Source: Leucoraja erinacea (lineage: Eukaryota). From it: a DNA stretch of 64,000 nt. A program made the translations under genes and the position numbers. Each line of letters starts with the position of its first letter. Within the stretch, counting starts at the first letter, position 1. The DNA is taken from the NCBI RefSeq assembly GCF_028641065.1, contig NC_073393.1, forward strand, positions 19,902,001 to 19,966,000, read 5' to 3'. This document shows positions 10,134 to 49,053 of the stretch, piece by piece. The notes below the pieces were generated by a model. That model saw nothing but the letters and a program-made list of their open reading frames with translations. It did not search any database and was not told the DNA's origin.

Positions 10134-10229
10134 TTACAATACCTGGCCATAGGTTGTTCGTTCTTCGTGGCGTTTGTTTTTCGTAGTTTTCTTCTGTCCG
10201 CTGAAGTTCATATCTGCATACGAAGGATA
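10134..10229 (-). CDS. Gene B cyt2 exon YPSYADMNFSGQKKTTKNKRHEERTTYGQVL*
   Basis: gttccctcag| acceptor, phase 0; YADM and TTYGQV (ITSM). Homologous to gene A 5432-5566. Confidence 0.75.
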   Translation of the reverse strand, partial: YPSYADMNFSGQKKTTKNKRHEERTTYGQVL

Positions 10230-13200
10230 CTGAGGGAACATTTATTTGAAAGGGAATAAACTCCGCATTTACAAACAACTGCGAAGACGAGCAAACACAA
10301 AACAAGCGGGTGGAAGCTGGGTCCGCACGACCAGTCATTCCATTGCTATATATGGTTACTTCCCTATGATGAGATTACTAAAAAAGTAAACGGAAGCAAC
10401 TCGTATCTAATTGGTTTGAGTTTCCTGAATAATTAGTGAACTATTAGCCAAATCGTGAAACGCATGGGGCAAAACACTGACCGAAAGTGTGTTGGACGAT
10501 GACTTCGAGGAAAATATAGAGTTGACGCGATTTCTGGGCTCAGACATGTTAGCAGATTTTCCGTCATATATCAGAACGAGCTACTCCGCAAAAAATATGA
10601 CGTGTGAATTTTGAATTGGAACAGGATGTGCCTCGGTTGTGATGCTTCACTAAGTAAATAATCCGCGCGACACAGACGGATTAGACATAAACTATTTAGG
10701 ATAACTCGAAGGATACGCAAGTACACGTCGCTGACGATCATGGACTATATCATAAGAATATGGGAGGATAAGGAAAAGCGCAAACGGTGCACATAGAGAG
10801 TTTCTCGAAAAGTGAATCCATCCTGTTGTCCCATCAATATCCTGTTAAACCATCAAAACAATTACCTGTTTTTCGAAATGGTGGGTTCTGGCTTCAATAT
10901 TTTCAGGTGCTAGTAGAGAACATAATAAAAAGACCAAATTTAATCATCAACGTATCACAACCTGCCTGCCGATAGTCAGTTAATAATCGAGTTGTGACCA
11001 GATTCGTTCGGCTGCAGAAATTGACCATTGCGATCATGCTATCTTGTTATTTAAACAAATCCTCTCCTCGTTAGTCCTAATGCTAAGGAAAAGCACACGG
11101 AAAAGTTGAAAACCTATTGTTTGCTTCCGCTTTCCTGTGATAACTGCCCCCTATTTAAACAACCCGACCTTTGCAGCATTTCACCTAGTGTTTAAAAACG
11201 CCTTCTTTTAGAACAAACGAAAACAATGATTTTGCAACCAACGGCTTAAACCGGTTAAAATGATGTTTGCCACAGAATGCTGCGGGCCGGAAAAAGGCCA
11301 GGTGGTCTAAATCGTTATTTCAGCACTCCTCGTTCCACCTTCAACTGAACATTGCTATTTTCGGAAGTAATTCAGTGGGTTAGGCAGCATCTACGGGGGA
11401 CATCGATAGTCGAAGTTCCGGCTCAACCCCAAAAGTCCCCTATCCATTGTCTATTCAGATGTTGCCAAACCGCAGAGTTATTCCAGCACTGTGTCGCTAA
11501 TTTCGTACAAGGATCAAATCAATTCTTACCTTCAGTACTGTGTAATTTGTACCGCCTGACATAACACACCAGCGCTGGAATAATTAGCACGCATATGGCA
11601 AATCCACCCGCCAGAAAGTAGACGAGTTTAACGCGTGTTCCTAAAGGGAAAATAAAAGCTGAATATTATAACTTTTCAGAGGTTATCTTAATCAATTATC
11701 TTAAATAATCAGAGTACACGAACCAGGGATTACAGAATGGGTTCCACATTTTCACTTTATTACGCTGAATTCCATCTGCCACTTATTTACCCCCTCTCCC
11801 GAGCTGTCCAGGTCCTTCAGCAAACTCCCTGCTTCCTCAGCACTATCTGCCCCTGTACCCATCTTAATGTCATCTGAAAAATTGGCGAAAGAGCCATCAA
11901 TTTCATCATCCTGATTTACATATAATGTAAAATGTAGCAGACACAACACCGACCCCTGCAGAACACCACTAGTCAACCGCAACAAACCACAAAATGGCCC
12001 TTTATTGGCACAATTTGCCTTCTGCCAGTCAGCCAATCTCCAATCCGTGCTACTCCCTTGCCTTTAATGCCTTGCGCTTCTATTTTATTCAGCGGCCTCA
12101 CGTGTGGCATCTCGTCAAAATTCCAAACAAAATGCATCCTTAATACGGATTCTAAAATTAAAAAATGTCAATCAGTAGCCTATAAAGATTAAGCTTCGTT
12201 TTACTCTTCATACTGTCCGATTGTTGAGTATCTCAAACATTTCCCTTTGTTTCTCCTTCACACTTTATGTCTACATACTATTTTGACATTGTACGAATGC
12301 GCTTGTCACCCCCTCGCCCCGTTTCGCCGTGTTACTGGTGACAGGGAGGAAGCCCCCAACTCTCCGGCAATCAAAATATAAACATTAAGGAAACGAATTA
12401 CCTGGAATGAAAACATCAAAAATGAATTCCACTGCGCATAATAAAAACACGATTTCTCGTGCACGATCTGTAATGTACTTAGTATTCGGTAAAATAGATT
12501 ATTCTACTGGGTTTCGGGACTATGTCTTCTGTGTTGGGATCATTAATATCGTAAATGCTGTTTAATTGAAATATCGACCGACTGTTGACATTTTGGAAAG
12601 ATAACTGCAGTCGATAGGGTTCATTTATCAACACAAGATCAGAATTATTCTGAGTTGTGATATATTTCTGAGAGGGTTTGGCGGACCAATCATTGATTCA
12701 CCATTGATGTGTTGCACGTGCACTATCCCAGCTTTCAAAATCGTTTGAACAATATAGACGCAAGTCACGTTATACAACCCCGAGAAAGTGACACTCTGGA
12801 TCCATTCCTGGCACATCTTCGCAGTTATTAACTCTGCTGTTTCACATCTGCAGAGACCCTGGATCAAATCTGGCCTCCAGTGTTCTCCGGGGTTTTGATA
12901 TTGCTACGGTGATCACGTTACTTCCGTAGGGTACTCTAACATCTTCCCAAATCTCAACCACTTGCAGGATTGTTGGTTAATTTGCCATTATACGTAGTCA
13001 TTAAGTTTGAAGAAGGGTCTCAACCCGAAACGTCACCCATTCTTTCTCTCCAAAGACGCTGCCTGTCCCGTTGAGCTACGCCAGTATTTTTGTGACTATC
13101 CTTGCTTGTCATTAAGGTGATGGTCATTTTGTGGGTAGTTGGTGGAACTGTGCAGGGAATGAAATGGGGCGACAGTAGGTTTTGTACAATTGGGGTAGCT

Positions 13201-16200
13201 GATCCCAAGCACTTGTTTTCTTCCTCTAACTACACAAAATATGTACACTAGAACCGTTGGGTTTGGGGCTGGAGAAAAGTATACAGTCTCCGTCGCTGCG
13301 ATTGAGCTTATTATTCATAATAGTGGGGAAGTGGAAAATTTATATTTAACATTTGTACCTTATGAAAACTCAAACGATGAAGAGACAACCAAGATTAAAC
13401 GATTGGGTTTATCAAACAAAAGAACAAAATATACAATGGGGGGGTACCTGTCGAGAGAATTTCATAATGGTGACTAAAGTTAAAGCAGGTACATAGCTAA
13501 TGGAAATCTTATTATTTATCAAGAAAGAACTAACATGTAAGCAAGGAGGTTGTGCCATTGCGTTAATTCACATTACAAGCTCTCGTACTGGCACCGTTAT
13601 CTCCAGCGCATTTCCTCCGGCTCAGCCAGGTGAACGGGCTCCATTACCTATATGTATTTTCTGAGACATTGTTTGACATTTTCTGATAATCGCACGTTCT
13701 GTAATCGCAAACTTCACTGGACCTTAATTGGTACATGTGACAATAAACTGACCTTGAAACCTTGAATGGCTGTTTCTATAAGCACCCTTTACCTCAACGT
13801 GTTTGCCTCCATCATTGTTTGGTCCACAACCATGCATGCTCAATGTATCAGTCTGCTGCTCTGATATCTAGTCCCAACACCCACCTGGAACAAGACGAGC
13901 TTTCTCCTTGTCCATAAGCTCATACGGTCACAAGGAATAGGAGTAGAATTAAGCCTTTCGGTCCATCGTCTACTCCACAATTCAATCATATCTGATCTAT
14001 CTCTTCCTCCTTACCCCATTTTCCTGCATTCTCCCCATACCGTCGGACACCTGTACTAATCAAGAATCTATCTATCTCTGCCTATAAAATATCCACTGAC
14101 GGCCTGCAAAGCCTTCTGTAGCAAATTATTCCACAGATTCACCGTTAATCTGTAAATCATCTTAAGTAATTTTAAGTGCTGCACAATTAGTAATGCGTTC
14201 GAAAAAAATCCCGTTATTTCAATTGGTAACCTGCAACTCTCAGACCAATAAACAATGGTCATTTAGCAAGTGCGAGGCACAGAAACATTCCGTAGGATGA
14301 TTTAACAGGCCTTGGGTTCCCTGAGAAGGGTAATCACCACCTTGTGCTCAACAGCGACACATCTAGTAGAGCTGCTGTTTCACAGCACCAGAGATACAGG
14401 TTCAATTTTAACTTGGGCGTTGGGCCCTGTCTATGTGGAGTTTGCACTCTCTCCCTGTAATCATTTGGGTTTCCTCATGGTGCTCCAGGTTTCTCCCACA
14501 TCTCAAAGACGTGTGGATTTATGCGGCAGCAATCTAGACGGCAGGAGAGGTAGAATTGGGACATTCGGCCATCCGCCATTCTATCGTGGCTGATCTTTCT
14601 CTCTCTCCTAACCCCACGGTCCCACCTTCTCCCCATAACCTCTGACACCTGTACTAATCTATCTCTGCCTAAAAAAATATCCACTGACGGCCTCCACGGC
14701 CTTCTTTTAATTATTTAATTCTGAGGCTATTACCTCTGGTCCTAGACTCGCCCGCTAATGGAAACATCCTCTCCTCATGCACTCTATCCAAGCCTTTCAC
14801 TATTCTGTATGTTTCAATGAGGTCCCGTCTCATCTTCTAAACTCCAGCGAATAGTGCCGACAAACGCTCATCATAATTTAACCTACTCATTCCCGGGTCT
14901 ATTCTTGTAAACTTCTTCCATGCTACTACCCTCTAACTTCAATGAATCATTAAGCGACCATCGGACCGCCTGACTGCTGTTCTCCCTCCACTTTCTTTCT
15001 CGCAAAGGCATTATTTCACCACAAACCATCTTCACTATCCTGTATCCGCGAACACCTACTTGCCTTCTCACCGTACCTTCGCATTGAGCGATAGATATTA
15101 TAATGTTTGTCCTTTCAAAACTTCCATTAACACCATCCAGTGATCTGCGTACTCCCGCCAGAGTTCACCTTTTCAGATTTCAATTGCTCCAGTATATTTG
15201 GTGAGGTCTTTTTTAGTTGGGAAACACCAAATGCAAACGGGAGCTGCGGAAGCACAGCGGCGCAGCTATAGAGCTGCTGCATCACAGCGCGAGAGACACA
15301 GGTTTGATCCGAACCATGAATGCTGTCAGTGTGGAAGGTGTACGTTCTCAATGTGACTGCGTTGGTGTTCTTCGGGTGATATGGTCTCCTCGCACATCCC
15401 ACATAGAATGGATGTGCAAGTGTGTAGACTAATTGGCTTCTGTAAGTTGTCGCCAGTGTCCAGGGAGTGGATGAAACAGTGTTCTAACAGAGAACTATAT
15501 ACTGGTGATCGATGATCAGCGCGGACTTGGTGTGCTGAAGGCTCCGTTTCCACGCGGTATCTCTAAAACTAACACTGTCAATATGAAGATGTTAACTCAA
15601 TTTCCAATTGTACCTAAAATCGTAATCCATCTTACATTTTCAATTTGTTTCCTTTACTTCTCGTCCTACCTCAACGAAGTCACAAGAATGTGTTATGGAA
15701 TCTCTTCTAACTGCAAGCAACCTTAGACCTGAGCAATGAATTCACCAATTTCAGAAAATTGGATGAAAACTGGCAGTTTCTATGAATGAAAATAATGGAA
15801 TAAATTCCAGATGCTGGGCGCATAAAATTAACTAAACATAGAAACCATCAGCTGGAATTATCGTTTATCCGTATTGTGTTCGCATATTTTCTTATTTCTC
15901 CTTTATTTTCATTTTCCTCTTCTATTTGAATCCCATCACAGATCAGCAACGATGATTAAAAAAAATATCTGAGTTAATGGCCACGTATGTTACTAAATTT
16001 CCCTTGGTCTCTGCCCTCCGGTTCATTGGTTTGGTCCCGTGGAACTTGTTTCCATGTTGGATTACCATCTCTCTCCAACGTTACAGCGATAAGACTACAC
16101 ATTATTTTACATTTAAGCAATGTCCTTATTATGCAGGGAAACAGCTTTACAAGTATTTGCTGAGACGACTTGTTGGTGTTCTGTGTGCAGTCCTGATCAT

Positions 16201-19134
16201 CCTTGGATTGTCATTATGTTGGAAAAGGTGCAGTAAGGATTCACCTAGGTATTACCTGGAATTCGTGGATGGAGTTATCCGGTGATGCTGAGCAGGTTGT
16301 GAGCTCTTCCCATGAGGCATGGGAGGTTTACCTAATTCAAGTATATAAAATTATGATGGGCGTAGAGAAAGTGAATGCTTACAGTCGTTTTACGAGGTTA
16401 CGAGGGGTCCAAGGGGCAATTTCTTTCCGAGGAAGCTACAGAAGCGTACACAATTGTGATTTTCAAAGGAATTTTGGATAGATATTTGGATAGGAAAGAT
16501 TTAGAAGGGAAATGGTCAAATGCGGAGAGATGGGTCTAGGCCAGAATGCCAACTTGCTTGACGTGGACGGGGCGGGCCGAAGGGCCTTGCTTCCATGCTG
16601 TAGAGCTCTATATGATCGGAGATAAACAGCGAGTTCCAACGTCCGCTATTACACAAACATGCAAACACAACTGTCATCTTTGCGCGATATCTCTTACTAA
16701 CCCGTATCTAGTTTCGTAGACTGTCATACCTTTCCATTACAACAAAGACATGCCCGCAATCTCCATCCAAATACTTAAAAACGGTCTAGCGTAAGTTTTG
16801 GGTGGGAATTCATGAAATGTCTTGACATAAAACAGTGATATATCTCAGGACGTTATTGAAGGTATAAACCTCATACCCATTCCAGGAAAACTGTGAGTTT
16901 CAACGGTCGGAACCAGGAGGGTGACGTGAAACACGTGGCAACTATAAACCGATCGGCGATCCACTACATGCAGGAAGCTGGAAGCAACGTATAATCCCTC
17001 TTCGTTCCGTATTTTAGTGGTATTTATTCCAGAAGTTATTTCTTGGCCATCTTTATACCAGGTGAGTTCACAGTCCGCCGGGAAAAACGGAGCAGTCGTA
17101 CAGTTTAGGGCCAGGGAAGGAGCGTTCATCTGTTTTATCTTCAAAGGCGTCGGTGACACTGAAACGATTTAAGACAAAGGAGTAAGTACCCCTATATCTT
17201 TATAAGACAATATAATCGCTTTCGAAATGTGTAATACCATACCTCTTGGGCGTTCCTTTAATAGCAAAGTATTTTAATTATTTTGTTGGAAATATATAGT
17301 ACAGTAAACCGGCGTTATAACGCAGTTGGACAGGAGCACTATATCTGAGGGCTAGTTGAGGCAGATGTCAACACCTATCACTTTCCCCAATGCCTCCATT
17401 CTGTCCATGCGAGGAATGTAGAAGTCTGGGGACGAGGGGTGAGCCAAGTCTCTGAAATAGAGCACAGAGCATTCGGTCATCTCTCTCTAATAAAGCTACC
17501 TTGCCTCTGGGATTTCCTTGTCATGGGCGATTCTCTTCTTTTTTAATGCTAAACAGTTTTAGTTTATTATCACGTGTACCGAGCCACAGTGAAATGCTTT
17601 TTGTTGTTTGTTATTCAATGAGCGAAAATACTAAACATGATTACAATTAAGCCGGCCGCATTGTACAGATTCAGGATTACAGGATAACGTTTAGTTCAAG
17701 ATAAAGTCGAGTGAAGTCCGATGAAAAAGATAGTTTGAGAATCTCCAGTAAGGTAGATGGTAGGACTTGACCTCTCTCTAGTTGGTGACAGGACGGGGTC
17801 GGGTATCTGCTGGGAACGCAATGGTGCTACACCAGACAAGGCAGAGTTCAAAGTGGTACAATCAAACAGAAAATTGCGTTAATTAACTCGTAAAGGGAGT
17901 TATTTTTGTATTATATGCAAAACACGCTGAACGGGAGAAGCAGCTTTATGTATGCGTGAAAGTCTTGTGAGAGGCAACGCGCAGAATAATGTATACGTTT
18001 GACATATGGAGTTGTATCTAATGTTACCCGGAGAATAAATAAAGTTTAGAGTGAAAAGGGTAGATATAGGAGCAACAATAAACAATACTGGGAATCTGTG
18101 GGAAGATCCGATCATGTTTGAAAATGTTTAAGATGAACTTTTAAAAGTAGTGTGATAAATTTTATTAGGATAAACGAATTTGGTCAAAGTAGTGGACGTT
18201 GTCTGCGCGGACCAGAAATGACTTTGACAAGGTTGCGCACTTGTACGTTGCTCTGGAACATTAGATCCCATGTGGTCCAGGGAGAGCTCGCCATTGGATA
18301 GAGAAATGGCTTCATGTAAGGAAGCAAAGGGTGATGGTGGAATATTGTATTTTGCGGACTAAATTCCGGGGAAGGCGAGAGGGGAACACTTACCAAGAAC
18401 CTAAGGGGCATCCTTTTCATGCAGATGCTGGTGTGTATATGGACTGAGGTGCCAGATGAGGTCGCTGAGGCAGCTACAACTTTTACCAGACATTTGGACG
18501 GATGCATTGGGGATAAGGTATAGAGAATGATAAGGGCCTATTACGGTGTGACAGTATTGTGATTCGAAACATCAAGTAAGACTCACCGTGTACAATAATC
18601 CTCGTGCCATTGCTTTTGGAAATCTTTCCATTCCCGCCTCTCACACTGCAATAATAGATCCCGGAGTCACGGAAGGTCGCGTTCAACAGATGTAATTCGG
18701 CAGATCCCTTCAGGACATTGTGCATTGTCATCCTCCTGTTTGCGGTGGGATTCAACGTCCCTTCTTGACCGTCTCTCTTCCAGTATACATCCACCAGTGC
18801 ATTCTGACCGAAGTTCGGGAAAGTACAGTATAGGGATACATTTTCACCTTTCACTTTCGTTACCTCATCAGGAATCTGACGCACCCTGAACGAGGAGGCC
18901 TCTTCAGTAACTGTCAAAATTAAAAAACAAACGTTAAACATGTGAAATGACAATGAACGGATTGATAAAAATGCAAATAGCTGAAATAGCTCGACCCAAA
19001 AGTAAGTTGCACATCTTATACTTTTCGCGGATTGACCTTTTCCCTGTTATTTTCCTTTAATAGAGGGAAATATGTTAACCTGTGTAACTCATATGAAGGA
19101 TCGAGAGACACAGCAGCACAGCAAACATAAACAT
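10134..19134 (-). CDS. Gene B: non-rearranging V-C1-TM IgSF receptor with cytoplasmic Tyr motifs (SIRP/NCR3-like architecture), putatively inhibitory or switch type
   Basis: Six exons with GT-AG boundaries and consistent phases: L 19080-19134, V 18587-18910, C1 16877-17158, TM 11530-11640, cyt1 10866-10909, cyt2 10134-10229. Confidence 0.85.
10866..10909 (-). CDS. Gene B cyt1 exon APENIEARTHHFEKQ
   Basis: ctctactag|...CAG|gtaat, 44 nt, phase 1 to 0. Paralogous exon at 40021-40063. Confidence 0.7.
11530..11640 (-). CDS. Gene B TM exon GTRVKLVYFLAGGFAICVLIIPALVCYVRRYKLHSTE (uncharged TM)
   Basis: ttttccctttag|...G|gtaag, 111 nt; hydrophobic stretch followed by basic stop-transfer residues. 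Confidence 0.85.
16877..17158 (-). CDS. Gene B Ig C1-set exon
   Basis: LNCTTAPFFPADCELTWYKDG...GLYVASSFL...YSCHVFH C1 signature; phase 1-1 exon, 282 nt. Confidence 0.92.
18587..18910 (-). CDS. Gene B Ig V-set exon with J-like G strand
   Basis: GENVSLYC...VYW...LHLLNATFRDSGIYYC...SNGTRIIVH; ttgacag|...G|gtgagt, 324 nt. Confidence 0.93.
19080..19134 (-). CDS. Gene B leader exon MFMFAVLLCLSILHMSYT
   Basis: Hydrophobic signal peptide, phase-1 donor AG|gttaac; conserved in gene E. Confidence 0.8.
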
Positions 19135-19235
19135 TCTGAACCAAGATGATGAAAACGATGTTTCCTCTCTGAGAGCGAGTCAAGCAGTGAAGCTTGTTGG
19201 CGAGCGTCTTGCAGCAATACCGCGTGGCCCCAATG

Positions 19236-19257
19236 GTTCCGTTTCACTTTGACGTCA
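19236..19257 (-). promoter_or_regulatory. IRF-E/ISRE-like site abutting a perfect CRE upstream of gene B
   Basis: Minus strand TGACGTCA-AAGTGAAACGGAA, about 100-120 bp upstream of the ATG; conserved upstream of gene E. Confidence 0.5.
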
Positions 19258-20024
19258 TAGCGCTGGAAAGCACACTTAGTGTCATGGAGAACACAGACGT
19301 TGCAGATATTATCTAGAGAATATGGCGCATTTTTGTGCATCATGGAAAGTTTTGATTTGATGCAGCTTCGCTTATGTCACAAACCCGGTTAACCTTTACA
19401 GATGGTTTAAATGATATGGCCAATCGAAAGAAGAATATCAAGGCAACGCAACGTGAAATACATACATAGAATTGGTAAAAAGTGTCGAAGGGAAATGCCT
19501 CGCCAGCCAAATCTAAGCGTTTTACAGATACTGCAGCAGTTAGAATGGGAGAGAAAAACCAACGCGTAGAACAAATAATCATATACTGTACATTATCTCT
19601 GCCATGGGGTAAAAAGACGTTTATGGATATGCCGGTGAATAAAGGACGGGCGCAGAGGATGGACAAAAATAAATACTTTCAAAACCTAAATGTTACTAAA
19701 GAGTTTAGAATTTAGAGAATATAGAAACAGTCCCATCGGAGCATCGAATCCACGACAACCATCGATCACCTCTTGACACCAGTTCCATGTTATCCCACTT
19801 TCTCACCCACTACCTGCATGTTAAGGGCAATTTACAGCAGCCAACAAAGCAGCAATTCTTTGGGATGTAGGAAGAAATCAGAGCACACGTAGAAAACCCA
19901 TATAGTTATAAAGGAGAACTTGCAAATTCCACACAGACAGCACCGAACTAGGTTAGGATCAAACGAGGATCTCCGGCAATGTGAGGCGGCATCTTGACCA
20001 GTTACCACCATTGAAGAGGTTTAT

Positions 20025-21845
20025 GATTTGATTTGATTTGATTCAACTTTATTGTCATTGCACAAATACGAGTACAAGTACAACGAAATGCAGTTTAGCA
20101 TCTAATCAGAGTGCAAGGTAGTAAAAATACTGGTTAAAACAATATGTGCAATGTGGATGAATTAAGCTAGTACATAGGCAATAAATATAACCAGATAAAA
20201 TAGTATAAAGATAGCTAGCGTCGGGTCTGTGAGTTCAGCAGGGTGATGGTATTTTGGAAAAAGCTGTTCCTCAGCCTGCTTGTGCGAGACCTGAGGCTCC
20301 TGTACCGCGGTTAGGGTGACCGCGGTCCTTACTTAATGATTTTCCCGCCCGTCTCAGACACCGTTTGCGGGGGAGGGCATCCATGGCAGGGAGCGGGGCA
20401 TCGATGATGTGCTGAGTGGTTTTCACCACCCGTCGCAGTGCCTTCCTGTCAGCTGTTGTGCAGCTGCTGTACTATACCGTGAAGCAGGTGGTCAGGATGC
20501 TTTCAACGGTACAGCGGTAGAAGTTGGACAGGATCTGGGGGGGACAGTTGAACTTTCTTAAGCCTCCTCAGAAGGTAAAGGCGCTACTGCTTCAGTTTGG
20601 TGGTATTGAGGAACCAGGACAGATCCTCTGAGATATGTACCCCGAGGAATTTGTAGTTGGAGACGCGCTCCACCTCAGTCCCGTTTATGTGGATGGGGGT
20701 ATGTCTGCCACCTCTGGTCTTCCTGAAGTCTACGATGATTTCCTTTGTCTTCTTTGAGTTGAGGAAGAGGTTATTATTGGTACACCAGGCTGCCAGGTTC
20801 TGGACCCCCTCCCTGTAGGCTGATTCGTTATTGTCTCTGATCAGTCCTACCACCGTGGTGTCATCGGCGAATTTTATGATGGCGTTGGAGCCATACATAG
20901 GGACACAGTCATGGGTGAAGAAGGAGTCGAGTAGAGGGCTGAGCACACAGCCCTGTGGTACGCCAGTGTTCAGTGTCAGAGTGGAGGAGGTGAGGTTGTT
21001 GATCCTAACAGACTGGGATCTGTTGCTGAGGAAATCCAGTGTCCAATTGCAGAGGGAGGTGGTGATGCCAAATCCGCTGAGTTTGGTGATCAAACTGGCG
21101 CGGATGACAGTATTAAATGCGGAGCTGAAGTCGATGAACAACAACCTGATGTAGGAGTTGTTATTGTCCAGGTGGGTCAGGGCAGAGTGTAGGGCCGCAG
21201 ATGTGGCGTCAAGAGTCAAGAGAGAGTCAAGAGTCAAGAGTATATTTAATTGTCATTAAACTATTGTCATTAAACCTCTGTAGACCTGTTGGGCCGGTAG
21301 GCAAACTGATGGGGGTCCAGTGTGGGAGGGAGACTGAATTTGAGGTGAGCCAAGATCAGTTGCTCAAAGCACTTCACGATGACGGGGGTGAGTGCCACTG
21401 GGCAAAAGTCATTGAGACTCCCTGAAGCTGACTGTTTGGGCATTGGCACAATGGTTGAGGTCTTGAGGCAAGTAGGGACGACACCCTGGGCCAGTGACAG
21501 GTTGAAAATGTCAGTGAAGACCAGGGATAGTTGTCCAGCACATGCCCTGAGCACACGCCCGGGATGCAATGGGGCCGGCAGCTTTGTGCTCGTTCACTTT
21601 GCTCAGTACAGCAGAGGTGGAGAGACTGAGGGGTTGTCCATTCGGGGGTGGGGCAGGTTTGATGGCCGGTGTTATATTGTCCCGATCAAAACGAGCATAG
21701 AAGTAGTTTAGCTCGTCAAGAAGGGAGACGTTGTCTGGGGGGGGAGGGTGTTAACTTTATTGTAGTCGGTAATGGACTTGATGTTTTGCCACATGCGTCT
21801 GGGGTCGGAGATGTTTTGAAAATGCTCCTCGAAAATGAGCCCAAG
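20025..21845 (-). mobile_element. Rex1/Babar LINE (RT), degenerate; absent from the gene E copy
   Basis: [29 protein letters not shown] in ORF 20584-21237; (ATTTG)n tail; the paralogous site near 49850 lacks it. Confidence 0.85.
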
Positions 21846-22490: not shown

Positions 22491-22507
22491 GCGCCATCTA
22501 GTGGCCA
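22491..22507 (-). promoter_or_regulatory. Candidate CTCF site
   Basis: Minus strand TGGCCACTAGATGGCGC closely matches the CTCF core consensus; lies between divergent genes B and D. Confidence 0.45.
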
Positions 22508-22712
22508 ATTCTCATATTACACCACAGACTGCTTATTTCCGTGTTGCAGTCCATTAAACTAGATTATTATACCTATATACATATGACTTGTAAATATGAC
22601 TGTAATCATATATAATTAAGTATAATTATATGATATGAAAATAATATGATTAATATAATTGTAAGTGTTTTTTTAATGACACTGTCGCAGAAGTCCTGCT
22701 CCTGAACCAGCC

Positions 22713-38300: not shown

Positions 38301-38551
38301 GAAATTGGATGAACGTTAATGAACGTTTGATGATTTCGCAGCTATATTAAAATCTTCATTCCTGCATATTCTGTTACGTTATTCTTCTCCGTTCTTGGGT
38401 CTTTCGGAGAAGCGATGAGATCCAGAGTAGCATTGGTCAGCTTATTTTCAGACACTTCTTTGACCTATCGAAAAATAATCAGAGATCGTTAGCTGCCGAT
38501 TCGCCTATATGGGCGACGTACGCGAATTTATATTGGAGCACCCTTCCGCTT

Positions 38552-38647
38552 TTATCTTACCTGGGCATTGGTAGTTTGTTTTTCGTGCCGTCTGTTTTTC
38601 TCAGTTTTCCTCTGTCCGCTGACGTTCAAATCTGCACTCGTCGCATT
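38552..38647 (-). CDS. Gene E cyt2-homologous exon NATSADLNVSGQRKTEKNRRHEKQTTNAQVR* (Tyr-less; may be out of frame or untranslated)
   Basis: Colinear with B 10134-10229, same gttccctcag acceptor; three Tyr codons read AAT, AGT, AAT. Confidence 0.55.
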   Translation of the reverse strand, partial: NATSADLNVSGQRKTEKNRRHEKQTTNAQVR

Positions 38648-41600
38648 CTGAGGGAACATATATTGGAAGAGAAATAAACTCCGCATTTACAAACAACTGC
38701 GAAGACGAGGAAACATAAAACAATGGGGTGAAAGTTGGGTGTGCTATACGCTATAAACGGCTACTTCCCTGGGATAAGATCCCTAAAAAGTAATTGAAGT
38801 AATTGGTTTGATGTTCCTGAATAATTAGTGACTATTAGCCAAATCTTGACACGTGTGGTGCAGAACACTGACCGGAAGTTTGTTGGATGATAACCTCTGG
38901 GAAAATATCCAGGTGGCGCGGTTTCTGGGCTCAGACATGTTAGCAATATTTTCCGTCATATATCAGTACGAGCTACTGCACAAAAAATGTCGTGTGAGTT
39001 TCGAATTAGAACAGAATGGGCCTCGGTGATGATGCTTCACGGAGTGTTTAATTCGCTTGACACAGACGGATTAGACATAAACTGAAGGTAGAGAATAGGC
39101 GGCGTTTCGGGTCGAGACTCTACTTCAGTTTGATCAGTCTGAAGAAGGTTATCGACCCGAAACGTCGCCTATTGCTTCTCTTCATAGATGCTGCCTCGCA
39201 GGCTGAGTTTCTCCAGCATTTTTGACTACCTTAGATTTTTCCAGTATCCGCAGTTCTTTCTTAGACATAAACTGAAAGTTAACATGCAGGTATTAGTTGT
39301 CCTAGTTTGAGGAAGGACATTATTGCTATTGTGAGAGTGCAGCGTAGGTTCACCAGTTTAATTTCCGGGATGGCGTGACTGATATATGATGAAAGAATGG
39401 ATCGACTGGGCTTATATTCACTGGAATTTAGAAGGATGCGTCATCAAACATATAAAACTATTTAGGGATTGGACAGGCTAGATGCAAGAAATGTTTCCCC
39501 TTGTTGGGGGAGCCCAGAACCAAGAGTCACAGTTTAAGAATAAGGGGTAGGCCATTTAGGACTGAGATAAGGACAAACGTTTTCACCCAAAGAGCTGTGA
39601 ATCTGTGGAAGTCTCTGCCGCAGAAGGCAGTGGGGGCCAATTCACTGGATGCATTCAACAGAGAGTTGAATATAGCTCTAGGGTCTAGGGATATGGGGAG
39701 AAAGCAGGTACAGGGTACTGATTCTGGATGATAAGCCATGATCATATTAGATGACGGTGCTGGCTCGAAGGGTCCAATGGCCTACTACTGCACCTGTTTT
39801 ATATGCTTCTATGTAACTGTTTGGGAGAAAGATTCGCAAGCGCAGGTCGCTGACGATCATGGACTATACCATAAGAATACGGGAGGATAAGAAAAATTGC
39901 AAACGAGGCACATAGAGAGTTTCACGAAAAATTGAACCATCCTGTTCGCCCATCAATGTGATTATAATTACAGGCGTCCATTTGCAGAACATGATACGAC
40001 AGGTTATACAAGAAAATCACTTGTTTTCAAAGTAGTGGGTTATGTCCTCAATATGTTCTGGGGCTAGCAGAGAACATAAACAACCAAATTTAATTATCAA
40101 CATGTCACAACCTGCCGGCCGATAATCAGTTGAGAATCGATTTGTGACCAGATTCGTTCGGCTACAGAATGTGATCATTGCGGTCATGCTATTCTTGTTA
40201 TTTGAACAAATCCTCTCCTCGTTAGTCCTACTGCTGAGGAAAAGCGCGTGGAAAAGTTCAAAACCTCTGGTTTGAATACGCTCTCCTGTAATAACTGCCC
40301 TTATTTAAACAACCCGACCTTTGCAACATTTCACATAGTGTTAACAGCGCCATCTTGTATTACAAACGATAACAATGCTTTTACAGCCAACGGCCATAAT
40401 GCTACGGCCGGAGAAAAGGGCCCTGGTGTTTAAATCGTTACATGAGCTCATCTCGTTGCTCCTTCAATTGAACATTGCTATTTTCGGAGAAAACACGAAA
40501 TATTGTAGTTATTCAGCGGGTTAGGCATCGTCTACGGGGATCATCGATAGATGAAGTTTCGGGTCAGGACCCTTCTTTACACGTGACTCAAACCCAACCC
40601 CCCCCCCCCCCCCCTTTCCATTGCCTCTCCAGATGCTGCATAAATAGCCGAATTATTCCAGCACTGCGTTTTGCATCTGCAGTTCCTTATGTCGCTAATT
40701 TCAGACAAGGGTGAAGTCGCATCTTACCTTCAGTACTGTCTAATTCGTACCACCTGACAAAAAATACCACCGCTAGAATAATTAACACGCATATGGCAAA
40801 TCCACCTGCCCGAAAGTAGATGAGTTTAAGGCCTGTTCCTAAAGGGAAATGAAAGCTGAATATTAGAATTTTTCAGAGACGTTATCTTCATTAAATAATC
40901 AGATTACACGAAACAGGGAATTACAGGATGGGTTCCACATTTTCTCTCATCTCTCAAATGCATGACTGCTACACAGCATTCCATCTGCCACTTGTTTACA
41001 CCCACGCTCCCAAGCTGTCCAAGTCCTTCTGCAGACTCCCTGCTTCTTCAACACTATCTGCACCTATATTCATATCATCGGAAAACCTGCCGACAAAGCC
41101 ATCAATTTCATCCTCTAGACAATTAACATATAATGCAAATTGTAGCAGACTCAACACCGACCCCTGCAGAATACCAGTATTAAAACGTAGCTAACCACAA
41201 AAGGCCCCTTTATTGCCACGGTTTGTCTTCAGCTAGCAAGCCAATCTTCAATCCGTGATAATTCCTAATGCCATGCGCTTCTATTTTGTTTAGCGGTCTC
41301 ACATAGGGCACCTTATCAAAGGCCTACTGAAATTCGTTGAACGACGCCATTGGTTTTCTTCACTACCTGCTGTACTTGCACGTCAACTTTCAGTGAATGG
41401 TGTACAAGGGCACCCTGGTCACGCTGTAACCCATTGAGATTACAATCTGTCCCCTTGTTTTTGCCACCAAAGTGGGTAACCTCACATTTATCTATATTAT
41501 ACTGCATCTGCCACGCATCTTCCCACTCACTCAACCTGCCCAGGTCAACCTGCAACGTCCTAACATCCTCTTCAAAGTTCACACTGCCACCCAGCTTTGT

Positions 41601-44600
41601 GTCATCTGCAAACTTGCTAGTGTTGCTCCTAATTCCCTCTTCCAAATCATTAATATATATGGTAAACAGTTGCGGCACCAACACCGAGCCTTGCGGCACT
41701 CCACTCGTCACTGCCTGCCATTCTGAAAATGACCCGTTCACTCCTACTCATTGCTTCTTGTCTGCCAACCAATTTTCTATCCATGTCAATACCCTACCCC
41801 CAATATAATGTGCTCTAATTTTAGTCACCAGTCTCCCATGCGGGACCTTATCAAAGGTTTTCTGAAAGTCTAGATACACTACATCCACTGCCTCCCCTTC
41901 ATCCATTTTACTTGTCACATCCTCAAAAAATTCCAGAAGATTAGTCAAGCATGATTTTCCTTTCATAAATCCATGCTGACTTGGACTAATCCTTTTACTG
42001 CTATCCAAATGCTCCATTATTACCTCTTTAATGATTGACTCCAGTATCTTTCCCACCACCGAAGTTAGGCTAACTGGACTGTAATTCCACGTTTTCTCTC
42101 TCGCTCCGTTCATGAAAGGTGGGATAACATTAGCTATCCTCCAATCCACAGGAACTGACCCTGAATCTATTGAACATTGGAAAATGATCACCGGTGCGTC
42201 CAATATTTCTAGAGCCACCTCCCTGAGGACAATGGGATGCAGACCATCGCCTAATTATAATTTATTTCAGTTTCTCTACCCCCTTTGATCCTCTGTCCTC
42301 GAGTACTTCTGGGAGATTGTTTTGTCTTCCCTAGTGAAGACAGATCCAAAGTGTCAGTTCAACTCCTCTGCCATTTCCTTGGTGCCCATAATAATTTCAC
42401 CCGTGTCTGCCTTCTGATTTTGCTACTCTTTTTCCCTTAACATATCTAAAGAGGCTTTTGTTGACCTTCTTTATATTCCTGGCCAGCTTCCCCTCGTACT
42501 TCATCTTTTCAGCCGTATTGCCCGTTTTGTTTCCTTCTGTTGTCCAATGAAAGTTTCCCAATCCTCCGGCTTCCGACTACTCTTTACTGTGTTATGCATC
42601 TTTTCTTTTAATTTTATTCTATCCCTAACTTCTCTTGTCAGTCACGGTTGCCTCCTACTCCCCTTAGAATCTGTCTTGAAATGTCTGGGAGCACAGAACA
42701 GATCAGACCGTTCAGCGGAACGCACATCAGCCGGAATTATCGCTTATCCGCATTATATGTATAACCTTTCGAACATTTCCTTGTATCTCCTTTCTTTCAT
42801 TGGCCTCTTCTGTTTGAATCTCATCACAGATTAGCAACAACGAAAAATAAATCATCTGAGTTAATGAAAAATAAATCATCTGTTTTAATGCTATAAAATC
42901 TGCCTTGGCCTCTGTCTTGTGGTATTGGTCCCTTGGAACTTGAAATATGTTGGATTACCGTCCCTCTCCAGTCTGCAATGTTACAGCGTTAAGACTGAGA
43001 ATTAATTTGCATATAAACAGAAAACAATGCCCTTATTATGCAGGGAAACAGCTTTACAAGTATGTGCTCGTTGGTGTTCTGTGTGCAGTCCTGGTCATCC
43101 TGCCTATACGTAGCATGTCATTATGTTGGAAAAGGTGCAGAAAGGATTCACCAAGGTATTACTTTGATGGCTGGAGTTATCCGGTAATGCTGAGCAGGTT
43201 GTGACCTCTTCCCATGAGGCATGGGAGGTTTACCTAATTGAAATATATAAAATTATGAGGGGCGTAGAGAAAGTGAATGCTTACAGTCGTTTTTGCCAGG
43301 GTAGTGGATTCTAAACAGGGAAGGTTACGAGGTTCCCAAGGGGCAATTTCTTTCCGAGGAAGCTTCAGAAGCGTATTCAATTGTGGATTTTCAAATGATA
43401 TTTGGATAGATATTTGGATAGGAAAGATTTAGAAGGGGAAATGGTCAAATACGGGCAGATGGGTCTAGTCCAGATTGCCAACTTGCTTGACATGAACGAG
43501 GCGGGCCGAAGGGCCTTGCTTCCATGCTGTAGAGCTCTATATAATCGGAGATAAACAGCGAGTTCCAGCGTCCGCTATTACACAAACATGCAAACACAAC
43601 TGTCATCTTTGCGCAATATCTCTTACTAACCCGTATCTAGTTTCGTAGACTGTCATACCTTTCCATTACAACAAAGACATGCCCACAATCTCCATCCAAA
43701 TACTTTAAAACGGTCTGGCGTACGTTTTGGGTGGGAATTCATGAAATGCCTTGACATAAAACAGTGATATATCTCAGGACGTTATTGAAGGTATAAACCT
43801 CATACCCATTCCAGGAAAACTGTGAGTTTCAACGGTCGGAACCAGGAGGGTGACGTGAAACACGTGGCAACTATAAACCGATCGGCGATCCACTACATGC
43901 AGGAAGCTGGAAACAAGGTATAATCCCTCGTCGTTCCGTATTTTAGTGGTACTTATTCCAGAAGTGATTTCATGGTCATCTTTATACCAGGTAAGTTCAC
44001 AGTCCGCCGGGAAAAACGGAGCAGTTGTACAGTTTAGGGCCAGGGAAGGAGCGTTCATCTGTTTAATCTTCAAAGGCGTCGGTGACACTGCAAACAATTT
44101 AAGACAAATGAGTTAGTACCCCTATATGTTTATTTAGAAGACAATGTAATCGCTTTCGAAATGGATAATACCATACCTGCTTGGGCGTTCCTTTAATAGT
44201 AAATTATTTAAACTATGTTGTTGGAAATATATAGTGCAGTAAACACTTGTTATAACGCAGTTGGCCAGGACCACTATATATGAGCGCTATGTGAGGCGGG
44301 TGTCACCACCCATCACCTTCCCCAACGGCTTCATTCTGCCCATGCGACGAATGGAGAAACTATCGGCATGGACGGCTGAGTCTGGGGAAGAGGGGTGAGC
44401 CAAGTCTCTGTGAAAGAGAGCACAGAGCATTCGGTCATCTCTCTTTGTTAAAGCTACCTTGCCTCCGAGATTTCCTGGTCATGGGGGATTCTCTTTTTTT
44501 TTGTGCTTAACAGTTTTAGTTTATTATCACGTGTACCGAGCCACAGTGTTTGTTGTGTGTTTTTTGTTGTGTGTTATTCAATCAGCGAAATTACCGCACA

Positions 44601-45238
44601 TGATTACAATCAAGCCGTCCACATTGTACAGATTCAGGATTACCGGAGTCTGTTTAACTCAAGATAAAGTCCAGTAAAGTCCGATAAAAAGATAGTTTGA
44701 GAATCTCCAGTAATGTAGGTAGAATCTCCAGTGAGGTAGATGGACTTGACTTCTCTTTAGTTGGTGATAGGGCGGGTTTGGGTATCTGCTGGGAAAGCAA
44801 TGTTGCTACACCAGACAAGGCAGAGTTCAAGGTGGTACAATCAAACGGAAAATTGCGTTAATGAAATCATAAATTTAGTTCTGTTTGTATTATATGTGAA
44901 ACATGCTGAAAGACAGAAGCAGCTTTATGTACGCGTGGAAGTCTTCTGAGGGACAACGCGCAGAATAATTTGCACGTTTGACATAATGTGTAGTATCTCG
45001 TGTTACCCGGAAAATAACTAAAGTTTTGAGTGAAAAGGGTATTTTTAGGAGCAACAATAAACAATACTGGGAATCTGTGGGAAGATCCGATCAAGTTTGA
45101 AAAACGTTCTGCAGAGTTGTATTTAAGATGAACTTTTAATAGTAGTCTGATAAATCTTAATAGGGTAAACGACGAAGACACCTTAGTTTTAGTGTACATA
45201 ATAAAGGTAAAAAAGGGGAAATCGGGTGGCAGGCAGGG

Positions 45239-45287
<49 letters not shown>

Positions 45288-48200
45288 TAATTTAGAATGT
45301 GGTGATGCGAGTTAACACATCGGTTGTGCCTTATAATGGAATAAATCTACAGACGCCGAGAATCGATGAAACAATACATCAAATTAAGAGTGTATCAACA
45401 GAGGAATCGCATGTAAATACCTATATGAAGACTAGTGGATGACTCATATTGTGGCTATATTTGAGGGCTGCAAGCAAAAGTCTGGGAACTGTAAACCAGT
45501 CTGTGGTAGGAAGGCCACTGGAAATGATTCAGAGGGATAAATTATGTTCCGCATTTGATTAAAAAGGAGCTGATGGGGGGGGGGGGGGGGGGGGGGGGGG
45601 GTGGGGGTGGGGGGGGGGGGGTGCAATAGAATGAAATGTTTAGCAACATCCATTACTTAACTCCAAATAGGACACCATCTCAAAAGGCAAAGGGGCGTCA
45701 CCATTATGCTCCCGTCCACGTAACAAAAGCATTATCTCCACATCGGAGGATAAATCGTTGATCTCCATCCCAAACTGATCTACGCAAGTGCTCTCACCAG
45801 AGAATTTCCGCGGATCTTTCACAAGTAGTGATCGGAAATGTACTGGAAGCAGAGCTAATGAGACCGTGAAAAATAAATTAAATGAACACCTGGTGGAAAG
45901 CAATTGAAGCGTTCCAAGAAAGAAAGGGAGCATGGGACTGACAATTCCTGGTGGCGGCCAGGTAATTGATCTCTCAATTGCAACGCAAACTTCTTTTCCT
46001 CGGTTATTGTAATTTGATGTGGTGAAATGTTTCGTTTACAAGGACTTGATTCCACTACTCTGGGTAAAAGGCGATGCATATACCAGATTTATTCCGGTCA
46101 TGATCAGATACCCCTCAATAAGTTCACCCCTTACGCTCCTGCGCTGCAAATAATTAAGTCCTGGCCTGCTCCGGCTCTCCCTATAGCTCAGACCCTCGCG
46201 TCGTGGCAACATCCTCGTAAATCTGCTCTATACCCTTTCCAGCTTAAATACATCATGCGTAGTTGCAGAGGCAGATCCGATAGGGGCATTTAGATATTTT
46301 TAAATAGGCAAATACAGTGAATGAAAGGATATGTCTCACACAGAGCGGAGATTTATTTAGTTTGGCACCATATTCGGCACTGAAATTGTGGGCCGAAGGA
46401 CCTATTCATGTTCTATCTTTAGGAGTTGTTGAATTGATTTTTGAGCAGTTATAAGTTTCGAAAATGATGGGATGCTTTAGGTATTTGTCGTCTTCGCAAT
46501 ACATGTCACGGCACTTAAACTGGACAAGGTATGGTAGCGTGTCTGTGTGTATTCAGTAAACATAGAAATATAGAAAATAGGTACAGGAATAGGCCATTCG
46601 GCCCTTCGAGCCTGCACCGCCATTCAATATGATCATGGCTGATCATCCAATTCAGTATCCTGTACCTGCCTTCTCTCCATTACCCCTGACCCCTTTAGCC
46701 ACAAGGGCCACATCAAATCCCTCTTAAATATAGCCAATGAACTGGCCTCAACTACCTTCTGTGGCCGCGAATTGCAGAGATTCACCACTCTTTCTGTGAA
46801 AAAAAATTTCCCTCATCTCGGTCCTAAACGATTTCCCCCTTATCCTTAAACCCTTGTTCTGGACTTCCCCAACTTCTGGAACAATCTTCCTGTCCAACCC
46901 CTTAAGAATTTTGTAAGTTTCTATAAGATCCCCCCTCAATCTTCTAAATTCTAGCGAGTACAAACCGAGTCTATCCAGTCTTTCTTCATATGAAAGTCCT
47001 GACATCCCAGGAATCAGTCTGGTGAACCTTCTCTGTACTCCCTCTATGGCAAGAATGTTCTTCCTCACATTAGTAGTTGCTGATGTGGGATTGAAATGTA
47101 CGGTGGAATATTTCCACCCAGAAATCGAGTACGACGCTGACGTGTAATTATCATTCGTATTGAAACTTCTGTTCTCCCACTCGACGCTCTGCTGAGTTCC
47201 AATGAAACTCGAAGTAAAATGACGGATAACGTTTTGATTAATGTTCTCGATTTGCAATTTAATCATTTGATTTTGGTACTACTTTCATCTCCTTTGTTTA
47301 CATAGTTTGTGACGTTGCATTAATCTCAGATTTTCCCCCGTTTATCATGTAATTTTTTTTGTCTTCCACCCATACCAATGCGCCACCACGCACGCACCCT
47401 ACCTATTCTTCCCTGCTATACCTCTGAATTTCTTGAACAATTTTCATCATGAACTTTTGTTACTTCCGCTATAACGTTGTCGGCAGAAACTAATTTATGT
47501 AGTCGCAGATGTGTTGTGACTAGTATTTTCTCATTGATTTTCTTTGAAACTATGAATTCCTAAAATCACGGTAGAATAGTCTGTCAGAAGATTGCGGTTA
47601 GAATATATCACGCTCACTATTCATCAAATGTTTCTTCTAACAACATACGTTTTGTTAACATTTACTAGTTGAACTAGAAATAGCTACATAAATGATCAAA
47701 CATGGATATTGTGCATCAAAGAGCACCATTCGCGACCCCCCTAGAATGCTCCATCATCTGGATGTCACAGGTCTCGACTCGAACGCAATGTTTTTTTGAC
47801 TGAACGACTTCAGCTACAATACTCACCAACATATGATAGCTTATATTTAATTGACTACTATCTGCAATTTTAATCTATACTCCTTTCGCTGGATACAGTT
47901 GAGGGGCCGCCAAGAAAATTAACCCTACACATATAAATGATAACTAAATGATAGGAAATTAAAGAATAATGATTGTCCAAAGATCTCATGGTCCAACAAT
48001 CACGGAAAACCAATTTCTTAAATCGTTAGAGCAAAACCTCTAGTACGGACTGAGAAAGGGTCCGTTTATTGCTACTTTATAACTCTGTAGCACACCATAT
48101 TTCTGTGTTTGTATTGTCACCATTGGATAGAGAAATGGCTTCATGTAAGGAAGCAAAGGGTGATGGTGGAATATTGTATTTTGCGGACTAAATTCCGGGG

Positions 48201-48964
48201 AAGGCGAGAGGGGAACACTTACCAAGAACCTAAGGGGCATCCTTTTCATGCAGATGCTGGTGGGTATATGGAAGGAGGTGCCAGATGAGGTCGCTGAGGC
48301 AGCTACAACTTTTACCAGACATTTGGACGGATGCATTGGGGATAAGGTATAGAGAATGATAAGGGCCTATTACGGTGTGACAGTATTGTGATTCGAAACA
48401 TCAAGTAAGACTCACCGTGTACAATAATCCTCGTGCCATTGCTTTTGGAAATCTTTCCATTCCCGCCTCTCACACTGCAATAATAGATCCCGGAGTCACG
48501 GAAGCTCACGTTCAACAGATGTAATTCGGCAGATCCCTTCAGGACATTGTTCATTGTCATCCTCCTGTTTGCGGTGGGATTCAACGTCCCTTCTTGACCG
48601 TCTCTCTTCCAGTATACATCCACCAGTGCATTCTGACCGAAGTTCGGGAAAGTACAGTATAGGGATACATTTTCACCTTTCACTTTCGTTACCTCATCGG
48701 GAACCTGACGCACCCTGAACGAGGAGGCCCCGTCAGTAACTGTCAAAATTAAAAACAAACGTTAAACATGTGAAATGACAATGAACGGATTGATAAAAAT
48801 GCAAATGGCTGAAATAGCTCGACCGAAAAGTAAGAGTTGTACATCTTATACTTTTCGCGGATTGACCTTTTCCCTGTTATTTTCGTTTAATAGAGGGAAA
48901 TATGTTAACCTGTGTGACTCATATGCAGGATCGAGAGACACGGCAGCACGGCAAACATAAACAT
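38552..48964 (-). CDS. Gene E: paralog of gene B with TM Arg and degenerate tail (putative activating partner)
   Basis: Exons L 48910-48964, V 48416-48739, C1 43806-44087, TM 40728-40838, cyt1 40021-40063 (1 nt short), cyt2 homolog 38552-38647. Confidence 0.82.
39087..39260. mobile_element. Fold-back PLE-derived element, E-specific
   Basis: Flanked by direct repeat TTAGACATAAACTGAA; absent from the B copy near 10690. Confidence 0.7.
39277..39812 (+). mobile_element. CR1 LINE 3' fragment, E-specific
   Basis: Similar to 2520-3060. Confidence 0.8.
40017..40063 (-). CDS. Gene E cyt1 exon APEHIEDITHYFENK*
   Basis: Homolog of B cyt1; 43 nt to the AA|gtgat donor, or read-through to TGA at 40017-40019. 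Confidence 0.6.
40728..40838 (-). CDS. Gene E TM exon GTGLKLIYFRAGGFAICVLIILAVVFFVRWYELDSTE
   Basis: tttccctttag|...G|gtaag, 111 nt; CGG (Arg) at 40810-40812. Confidence 0.85.
41345..42672 (-). mobile_element. CR1 LINE RT fragment
   Basis: ORFs 41316-41741 and 41748-42218 with GVPQGSVL, KFADDTK, DFQKTFDKV. Confidence 0.88.
43806..44087 (-). CDS. Gene E C1-set exon
   Basis: 6 of 94 aa differ from gene B C1; intact splice sites. Confidence 0.92.
46560..47068 (-). mobile_element. CR1 LINE 3' fragment
   Basis: AIEGVQRRFTRLIPGMSGLSYEERL, nearly identical to the 1235-3064 copy. Confidence 0.85.
48416..48739 (-). CDS. Gene E V exon
   Basis: 6 of 108 aa differ from gene B V; intact splice sites. 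Confidence 0.93.
48910..48964 (-). CDS. Gene E leader exon MFMFAVLPCLSILHMSHT
   Basis: Homolog of the B leader with the same donor. Confidence 0.78.
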
Positions 48965-49053
48965 TCTGAACAAAGGGGGTGAAATTCAACGATGTTTGCT
49001 GTTTGACAGCGAGTCAAGCAGTGAAGCTTGTTGGCGAGCGTCTTGCAGCAATG

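Follow-up and report, generated by a model that had tools for sequence, protein, structure and literature searches.

We analysed a stretch of 64,000 nucleotides (the window) on contig NC_073393.1 of the skate Leucoraja erinacea, in which two minus-strand paralogues, here called B and E and spaced 29.8 kb apart, look like the two members of a paired immune receptor system. Judging from its coding sequence, B is an inhibitory receptor with a SIRP-alpha-style tail that has been kept in sharks and rays. E may be an activating receptor derived from a B-like inhibitory gene, with an ectodomain kept like that of B, a reading to which we give a probability of roughly 45% and in which an activating function can reasonably be inferred. 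The structures of the two genes, the polarity of the changes between them and the tracts of gene conversion are established at the level of sequence comparison. By self-comparison the window contains two colinear blocks (~9760-25289 and 38180-59582) whose identity is 74-92%, rising locally to 95-100%. Each block has one minus-strand gene with V-set and C1-set immunoglobulin (Ig) exons, B in the first and E in the second, together with a more distant plus-strand V-C1 gene lying head to head with it (D and F, respectively).

The model of B (Table 1) is colinear with P0004, P0009 and P0161, full-length shark and ray proteins that have the same exon junctions and the same order of tail motifs, and its first cytoplasmic exon (cyt1) matches the AAENDENLSRYLENQ segment of shark and ray homologues. 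The original prediction, made from the letters of the window alone, took the next exon to be the last one, reading ...GQVL and a stop through into the intron, and let the gene pair begin at 10134. This exon, exon 6, in fact ends at a canonical donor (CAG/gtattg), and an in-frame seventh exon after a canonical acceptor encodes ...KLTYATLDL...TEYAGIRIFQ followed by a stop, which moves the boundary to 9924 and supplies a canonical immunoreceptor tyrosine-based inhibitory motif (ITIM) and a second immunoreceptor tyrosine-based switch motif (ITSM). We sought a second C1 exon in the 5.2-kb intron between the C1 and transmembrane (TM) exons of B and found none, C1 being spliced straight to the TM exon. 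Once phosphorylated, the tyrosine motifs of the B tail (YADM, TTYGQV, LTYATL and TEYAGI) would be expected to recruit phosphatases of the SHP-1/SHP-2 type.

E keeps an open reading frame from its ATG to the end of the TM segment, and its V and C1 domains differ from those of B at 6 of 108 and 6 of 94 residues, exactly as had been counted before; the two genes have the near-identical, linked ectodomains of paired receptors. Exon comparison likewise bears out the two changes on which the original prediction was built. The TM segment reads YFLAGG in B, with a Leu codon CTG (CAG on the plus strand at 11612-11614), and YFRAGG in E, with an Arg codon CGG (CCG on the plus strand at 40810-40812), while cyt1 of E has 43 nt to the 44 nt of B, a run of five A being shortened to four, which leads to early termination. 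The Arg occupies position 5 of the 23-residue TM helix and forms part of an RAG motif that is also found in the TM segment of the neighbouring gene D. After the frameshift E reads ...THYFENKMRRVQI and then stops, so that the tail has ~31 residues, ends in KMRRVQI and contains neither ITIM nor ITSM. Provided that the run of four A in the assembly is right, E combines the basic TM residue and the short, ITIM-less tail of an activating member.

In the ancestral frame of the tail, the contrast noted earlier between YPSYADM...TTYGQ in B and NATSADL...TTNAQ in E is present in exon 6, though the earlier count of three tyrosines, all of them replaced, has to be revised: four of five are replaced and one is kept. 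Given that the two tail exons differ at 36% of their amino acids overall, a loss of this size is not significant on its own (binomial p ~0.06).

Searches for relatives were run exon by exon. When the V exon of B was compared by phmmer with 1.84 billion representatives, it matched single-V-C1 proteins of 260-450 residues with 44-58% V identity (E=1e-25 to 1e-32) from the genera Mobula, Scyliorhinus, Heterodontus, Cetorhinus, Mustelus and Chiloscyllium, for instance XP_072135199 of Mobula birostris, XP_067905923 of Heterodontus francisci and XP_038661939 of Scyliorhinus canicula. NCBI labels such homologues ‘tyrosine-protein phosphatase non-receptor type substrate 1-like’, ‘tapasin-related protein-like’, ‘NCR3LG1-like’ or ‘uncharacterized’. 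B and E share the leader-VJ-C1-TM-cytoplasmic layout and the order of tail motifs with elasmobranch SIRP-alpha-like RefSeq models, and are colinear with them through the TM segment and tail.

The direction of the changes, which the original prediction had proposed to settle with other rays and sharks, was read from an alignment of B and E with 12 shark and ray homologues. At the TM position that is Leu in B and Arg in E, every homologue with an inhibitory tail has Leu (Mobula, Heterodontus and Scyliorhinus) or another hydrophobic residue. Tyr 1 (S-Y-A-x-L), Tyr 3 (L-T-Y-A-x-L) and Tyr 4 in the terminal T-E-Y-A-G-I are kept from Heptranchias and Heterodontus to Mobula, in nearly all homologues that carry the corresponding tail exon, and at the TM Leu, Tyr 1 and Tyr 3 it is E alone that deviates. 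Because the homologues keep the hydrophobic residue and the tyrosine motifs, the alignment indicates that the Arg, the frameshift and the loss of Tyr 1 and Tyr 3 are derived in E, the TM Leu and the motifs being ancestral. B has derived changes of its own in the same alignment, including a Pro in the TM segment and a change from YADL to YADM. The second tail Tyr is Asn in the inhibitory tails of Mobula and Hemitrygon (LTNALI; P0004, P0154-P0156), as it is in TTNAQV of E; the polarity of this change is ambiguous, and the site appears to be dispensable or repeatedly lost in batoids.

The TM exon of E is of the inhibitory type, close to that of B, and is not the dedicated activating module seen in D, P0159, P0024 and P0070. 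Together with the polarity of the changes this supports descent of E from a B-like inhibitory gene, and to that extent the earlier proposal that E is an activating derivative of a B-like ancestor holds good. The tyrosine replacements that had been cited alongside it are derived at Tyr 1 and Tyr 3. Because the exons downstream of the frameshift are untranslated, these losses nevertheless add little evidence; we rejected them as an independent sign of activating design, since neutral decay after the frameshift explains them in exons with intron-like divergence.

Synonymous divergence (dS) between B and E amounts to 0.014 for V and 0.064 for C1, against values of 0.12 (TM exon), 0.20 (exon 6) and 0.31 (exon 7). 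Two tracts are homogenised, one around the leader and V exons, where intron 2 beside V is also 98-100% identical, and one around C1; outside the tracts identity is 81-92%, with a value of 83% for non-coding sequence aligned in the 3' part. Because the dS and identity of the ectodomain lie so far from the values of the TM segment, the tail and the non-coding sequence, the leader-V and C1 segments must have been homogenised by gene conversion after B and E diverged. Homogenisation of the ectodomain is typical of paired receptors but can also occur in a dead copy. Positive selection on V was considered (6 non-synonymous differences versus 1 synonymous) and rejected, the numbers being tiny and the N-terminal differences adjoining an older and more diverged part of the tract.

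E might have arisen in three steps. One T to G change would have put Arg at TM position 5, creating an RAG motif as in the neighbour D; deletion of one nucleotide in cyt1 would have cut the tail to its present length, free of ITIM and ITSM; and the tail exons, no longer translated, would then have decayed, which would account for the tyrosine losses. Conversion has kept leader-V and C1 nearly alike, so that B and E would see the same ligand. If expressed, E would need an Asp-bearing adaptor with an immunoreceptor tyrosine-based activation motif, of the FcR-gamma or CD3-zeta type, in order to reach the surface, and it would signal activation. On this reading E would be expressed and would pair with such an adaptor, and B and E would signal in opposite directions. 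The fuller proposal, that E is a working activating receptor newly born from an inhibitory gene by these two mutations beside an older dedicated activating lineage represented by D, is put forward more tentatively still.

Activating-type relatives, in which a TM Arg is combined with a short tail, occur in Scyliorhinus (P0070), Chiloscyllium (P0024) and Mobula (P0159). The last of these, from Mobula hypostoma (LOC134356409), has the TM segment NLCRILLGLLVITVG... and a tail of 6 residues, and through leader and V it is identical at 120 of 125 residues (96%) to P0158 (LOC134356411), which has an ITIM tail. On the evidence of these models, the pairing of inhibitory and activating members appears to be a trait of the family.

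Several observations weigh against a functional E, and most of them would be expected if E were a decaying pseudogene of an inhibitory gene, in which the frameshift was the first lesion, the Arg and the tyrosine losses are neutral, and the ectodomain is held by conversion from B. We regard this explanation as a serious contender, if a somewhat doubtful one. The ratio dN/dS is close to 1, with ~1.2 for the TM exon and 0.8 for the tail exons. The TM exon is not significantly better kept than the introns (87.4% versus 83.3% identity), and the exons downstream of the frameshift diverge at or above the intron rate (79-83% identity versus 83% for non-coding sequence), as do the 3' exons taken together (75-83%); because these exons are untranslated after the frameshift, both this divergence and the tyrosine losses, not significant as they are, correspond to what neutral decay predicts. 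A distance of 65 nt separates the premature stop of E from the last exon junction downstream of it, so that the transcript is a predicted target of nonsense-mediated decay, and a Leu in the hydrophobic core of the signal peptide is replaced by Pro. Gene conversion from B can keep the ectodomain of a dead gene intact. A dedicated activating gene, D, already adjoins, and with many family members in the genome a chance TM Arg somewhere is expected as a matter of multiple testing. Pseudogenes are numerous in birth-and-death families, and if E is one of them the locus is an ordinary product of that process.

The TM segment gives evidence on both sides. In its core, 9 nucleotide substitutions between B and E result in 6 amino-acid changes, 5 of them conservative hydrophobic replacements and the sixth the Arg. 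When 9 random substitutions were simulated in the TM core, at least one Arg or Lys was gained in 43% of cases, in keeping with neutral origin of the Arg. However, one basic residue with all the rest hydrophobic was obtained in 7%, and in 2.9% with the basic residue among the outer 8 positions, so that chance alone yields a clean pattern with a single basic residue in no more than 3-7% of the simulations. It also speaks against a pseudogene that the Arg reproduces the RAG motif of the activating-type neighbour D, that 13 of 13 splice sites of E are canonical with the frame open to the end of the TM segment, and that each of the two ectodomain exons lies at the centre of a conversion tract of its own.

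Transcription adds little to either side. Four RNA-seq runs under the species label were placed on 38120-44119 at 97% likeness, and in these four runs no reads were found on the C1, TM, cyt1 or tail exons of E, a point in favour of a pseudogene that carries little weight. About 40% of 75-nt C1 reads derived from B would pass the 97% filter, and none was seen; because the B signal on the shared C1 segment is absent too, the runs are uninformative on E, and the RNA confirmation that had been proposed for its exons yielded reads on transposon parts only (39.1-39.9 kb and 41.3-42.7 kb). These reads are mostly 95-99% like the LINE (long interspersed nuclear element) copy in the C1-TM intron of E and the repeat at 39.1-39.9 kb, and would thus come from other copies.

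Two further explanations concern the assembly. The loss of one A from a run of five is a typical homopolymer miscall and could be an assembly error, in which case E would be a TM-Arg receptor with a disarmed long tail that has lost the ITIM and one ITSM and kept TEYAGM. Both downstream exons of E are open for 70 codons in the ancestral frame and have canonical splice sites, the donor of exon 6 (CAG/gtaaga) being even better than that of B, and the intact inhibitory tails of Mobula and Hemitrygon likewise have Asn in place of the second Tyr. A rough estimate, however, is that about one copy in three would keep 70 codons open by chance at the divergence seen here, and E has more derived changes at conserved tail positions (Y1, Y3, F, A and I) than B has (M and R), which fits an untranslated tail; we consider this explanation improbable. 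That B and E are two haplotypes of one locus, or that a mis-scaffolded contig was placed in tandem across the assembly gap, is suggested by their lying on different contigs and by the end of the B contig, where sequence reaching to within 5 nt of the gap is homologous to 59113-59614 upstream of E, but this was rejected as highly unlikely on divergence and content: the non-coding identity of 83%, the many indels, the 2.9-kb insertion in intron 2 of E and the different transposons are far beyond allelic divergence, and the flanking genes differ, with the inhibitory-type tail exon of a gene A beside B and the activating-type D beside E.

Table 1. Exons of genes B and E, homogenised tracts, neighbouring genes and assembly gap, numbered from the first nucleotide of the window
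Feature	Position	Strand	Remarks
Gene B	9924..19134	-	Predicted inhibitory VJ-C1-TM receptor; 7 exons, 341-aa open reading frame, complete; canonical splice sites
B leader exon	19080..19134	-	MFMFAVLLCLSILHMSYT; phase 1
B V exon	18587..18910	-	324 nt; Pfam V-set E=2.4e-13; J-like end NGTRIIVH
B C1 exon	16877..17158	-	282 nt; Pfam C1-set E=4.2e-13
B TM exon	11530..11640	-	...KLVYFLAGGFAICVLIIPALVCYVRR...; Leu codon CTG at 11612-11614
B cyt1 exon	10866..10909	-	44 nt; APENIEARTHHFEKQ; A5 run at 10869-10873
B exon 6	10143..10229	-	YPSYADM (YxxM) ... TTYGQ; after splicing, ITSM TTYGQV
B exon 7	9924..10046	-	ITIM LTYATL at 10005-10022; ITSM TEYAGI at 9939-9956; stop at 9924-9926
Gene E	38342..48964	-	Same 7-exon layout as B; all splice sites canonical; frame broken in cyt1
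E leader exon	48910..48964	-	MFMFAVLPCLSILHMSHT
E V exon	48416..48739	-	324 nt; 97.8% nt identity to B; 6 aa differences
E C1 exon	43806..44087	-	282 nt; 96.5% nt identity to B; 6 aa differences
E TM exon	40728..40838	-	...KLIYFRAGGFAICVLIILAVVFFVRW...; Arg codon CGG at 40810-40812; 87.4% nt identity to B
E cyt1 exon	40021..40063	-	43 nt; A4 run at 40024-40027 (1-nt deletion relative to A5 of B); G>A at last exon base
E exon 6	38561..38647	-	Shifted frame: KMRRVQI, stop TGA at 38626-38628; ancestral frame: NATSADL...TTNAQ
E exon 7	38342..38464	-	Untranslated in the E model; ancestral frame open: LTNATL (ITIM Tyr lost), TEYAGM (Tyr kept)
Homogenised tract 1	18288..19333	-	Leader and V exons with 300 nt of intron 2; identity with 48117-49160 of 95-100%
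Homogenised tract 2	16545..17240	-	C1 exon with flanking sequence; identity with the E copy of 94-100%
Gene D V exon	27320-27607	+	Gene D faces B head to head, with the assembly gap in between
Gene D C1 exon	30575-30862	+	
Gene D TM exon	near 34520-34640	+	Reads NTIVGWIRAGLIAIIIVIFIVIYKGKTPKLLDL, then stop; gene D spans 27320-34640
Gene F V exon	60962-61270	+	Head to head with E; only 28% identical to B V
Gene F C1 exon	62184-62477	+	TM and tail of gene F beyond the window end
Gene A tail exon	~5400-5545	+	Inhibitory type; ...KLTYTTLNIAGLKPSTKCRYVEESTVYAQ, then donor gtaagt; tail-to-tail with B
Assembly gap	25295-25756	.	Only N run of the window; intergenic between B and D; splits the B contig from the E contig

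A profile of the 12 homologues, searched against the PDB, found UrIg2 (9dmx) as its best solved-structure match (5.6e-26), followed by the IgA1 heavy chain (1e-24), SIRP-alpha (2wng; 7e-20) and SIRP-gamma (4i2x; 1.7e-17). The family thus consists of non-rearranging, antigen-receptor-like VJ-C1-TM genes with a SIRP-alpha-style tail. We rejected its identification as UrIg, in which there are several C domains without a tyrosine-motif tail whereas B and E possess only one C1 domain together with an ITIM/ITSM tail; as a SIRP orthologue, on domain count (one C1 and not V-C1-C1); and as PRARP, which is V-C2. No paper describing the family was found in the literature on SIRP, ITIM, PRARP, MDIR and adaptors in sharks and cartilaginous fish, which agrees with the original prediction, whose author knew of no such description for a chondrichthyan V-C1 family, though paired inhibitory and activating members of the family are already visible in the RefSeq models of Mobula hypostoma. 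A query with the V exon of E in a 5.8-billion-protein collection gave no candidate within a length window of 59-187 aa, which excludes full-length kin, and a query with P0004 of Mobula found no protein of this skate.

The closest counterparts of B are the elasmobranch VJ-C1-TM genes, which have the same exon layout, C1 domain, TM type and order of motifs (S-Y-A-x-L, T-x-Y-A-Q, L-T-Y-A-x-L and T-E-Y-A-G-I). The activating members in Mobula and Chiloscyllium and gene D have a separate, old TM and tail module (CRILLGLL..., FRLILGIV... and WIRAGLIA..., respectively), whereas E has an inhibitory-type TM exon changed by one point mutation and a frameshift. The SIRP family resembles the skate pair in its V and C1-set domains, four-tyrosine ITIM-type tail and paired organisation with similar ectodomains; B and E differ from it in having one C1 and not two, and both UrIg2 and Ig heavy chains outscore SIRP in the profile search. 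SIRP-beta has a TM Lys and uses DAP12, while E has instead an Arg in the outer leaflet.

The evolutionary route proposed for E is the same as that of KIR, Ly49 and the Siglec-5/Siglec-14 pair (PMC4042635). Activating KIR, Ly49 and Siglec-14 come from inhibitory ancestors that gained a basic TM residue, had the tail truncated by a frameshift or stop, and kept their ectodomain by conversion. Unlike E, these receptors have C2/I-set or lectin folds, and the TM residue of KIR, Ly49 and Siglec-14 is a Lys that pairs with DAP12. In its TM segment E resembles NKp30 (NCR3), which, like NKp46, LILRA and GPVI, has a TM Arg near the outer end that couples to FcR-gamma or CD3-zeta, in NKp30 as part of an RAG motif. 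NKp30 has a VJ-like V domain, and NKp30 chains match the V exon at E ~2e-4; it consists, however, of a single V without C1 and without an inhibitory twin, whereas B and E have a C1, and only the RAG motif is alike. Paired inhibitory and activating receptors are thought to be born of arms races with pathogens that exploit inhibitory receptors, and most worked examples are mammalian.

Systems of this kind are well known (SIRP, KIR, Siglec-5/14, NITR and skate MDIR), and what is distinctive here is the point-mutated inhibitory-type TM exon beside an older activating lineage. If E is indeed activating, the recurrent conversion of inhibitory to activating receptors seen in primate KIR and rodent Ly49 would already be at work in cartilaginous fish, on a VJ-C1 scaffold with kinship to antigen receptors and SIRPs. 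The skate pair would then be a clean and tractable case in the oldest jawed-vertebrate lineage, in which the sequence shows the polarity of each step, from Leu to Arg substitution and frameshift to tail decay and ectodomain conversion, and it would allow a test of how old the coupling of an outer-leaflet Arg to adaptors of the FcR-gamma/CD3-zeta type is.

Within cartilaginous fish, UrIg and UrIg2 are non-rearranging VJ-C1 genes of elasmobranchs with a single-exon VJ, a split leader and C1-set domains; UrIg2 of the nurse shark has nine C1-type domains after VJ, and the paper describing these genes contains neither the terms ITIM and ITSM nor activating/inhibitory pairs (PMC12227049). The skate MDIR genes form a multigene Ig superfamily group with activating and inhibitory members (PMC3031540), and the NITR genes are such a group in teleosts. 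The domains of MDIR resemble those of CD300, TREM and pIgR, and those of NITR are of V/I types; neither family has the VJ-C1 ectodomain.

Among the neighbouring genes, D appears from its sequence to be a dedicated activating-type gene, with an RAG motif in its TM segment (WIRAGLIA...; WIRAGLIAIIIVIFIVIY) followed by a 10-residue tail, KGKTPKLLDL, and a stop. The tail exon of gene A contains an ITIM, LTYTTL, and an ITSM-like TVYAQV. The assembly gap lies 6.2 kb upstream of the ATG of B, and none of the exons, introns and reading frames of the two genes extends across it; with B and E on different contigs, their order and spacing rest on scaffolding. On the left of the gap, 24833-25294 aligns colinearly with 59113-59614 in the second block, while the right flank is without counterpart there. 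Directly adjoining the gap is a GC-rich segment (53-58%), 82.7% identical between the blocks (24833-25289 and 59113-59582). Its distance upstream is 5.7 kb from B and 10 kb from E, and it may be either a regulatory region shared by the two genes or a repeat.

Two low-complexity open frames on the minus strand, 23213-23511 (HTHTH...) and 24145-24438 (SFIHS...), were considered as genes and rejected as simple-repeat artefacts. Intron 2 of E has, at 45172-48117, ~2.9 kb that B lacks, including a repeat at 46558-47076 with further copies at 2529-3060, 39300-39814 and 53229-53752. Fragments of LINE-type reverse-transcriptase reading frames, all on the minus strand, are found at 41319-42254, 20587-21593, 29291-29869 and 3788-4561.

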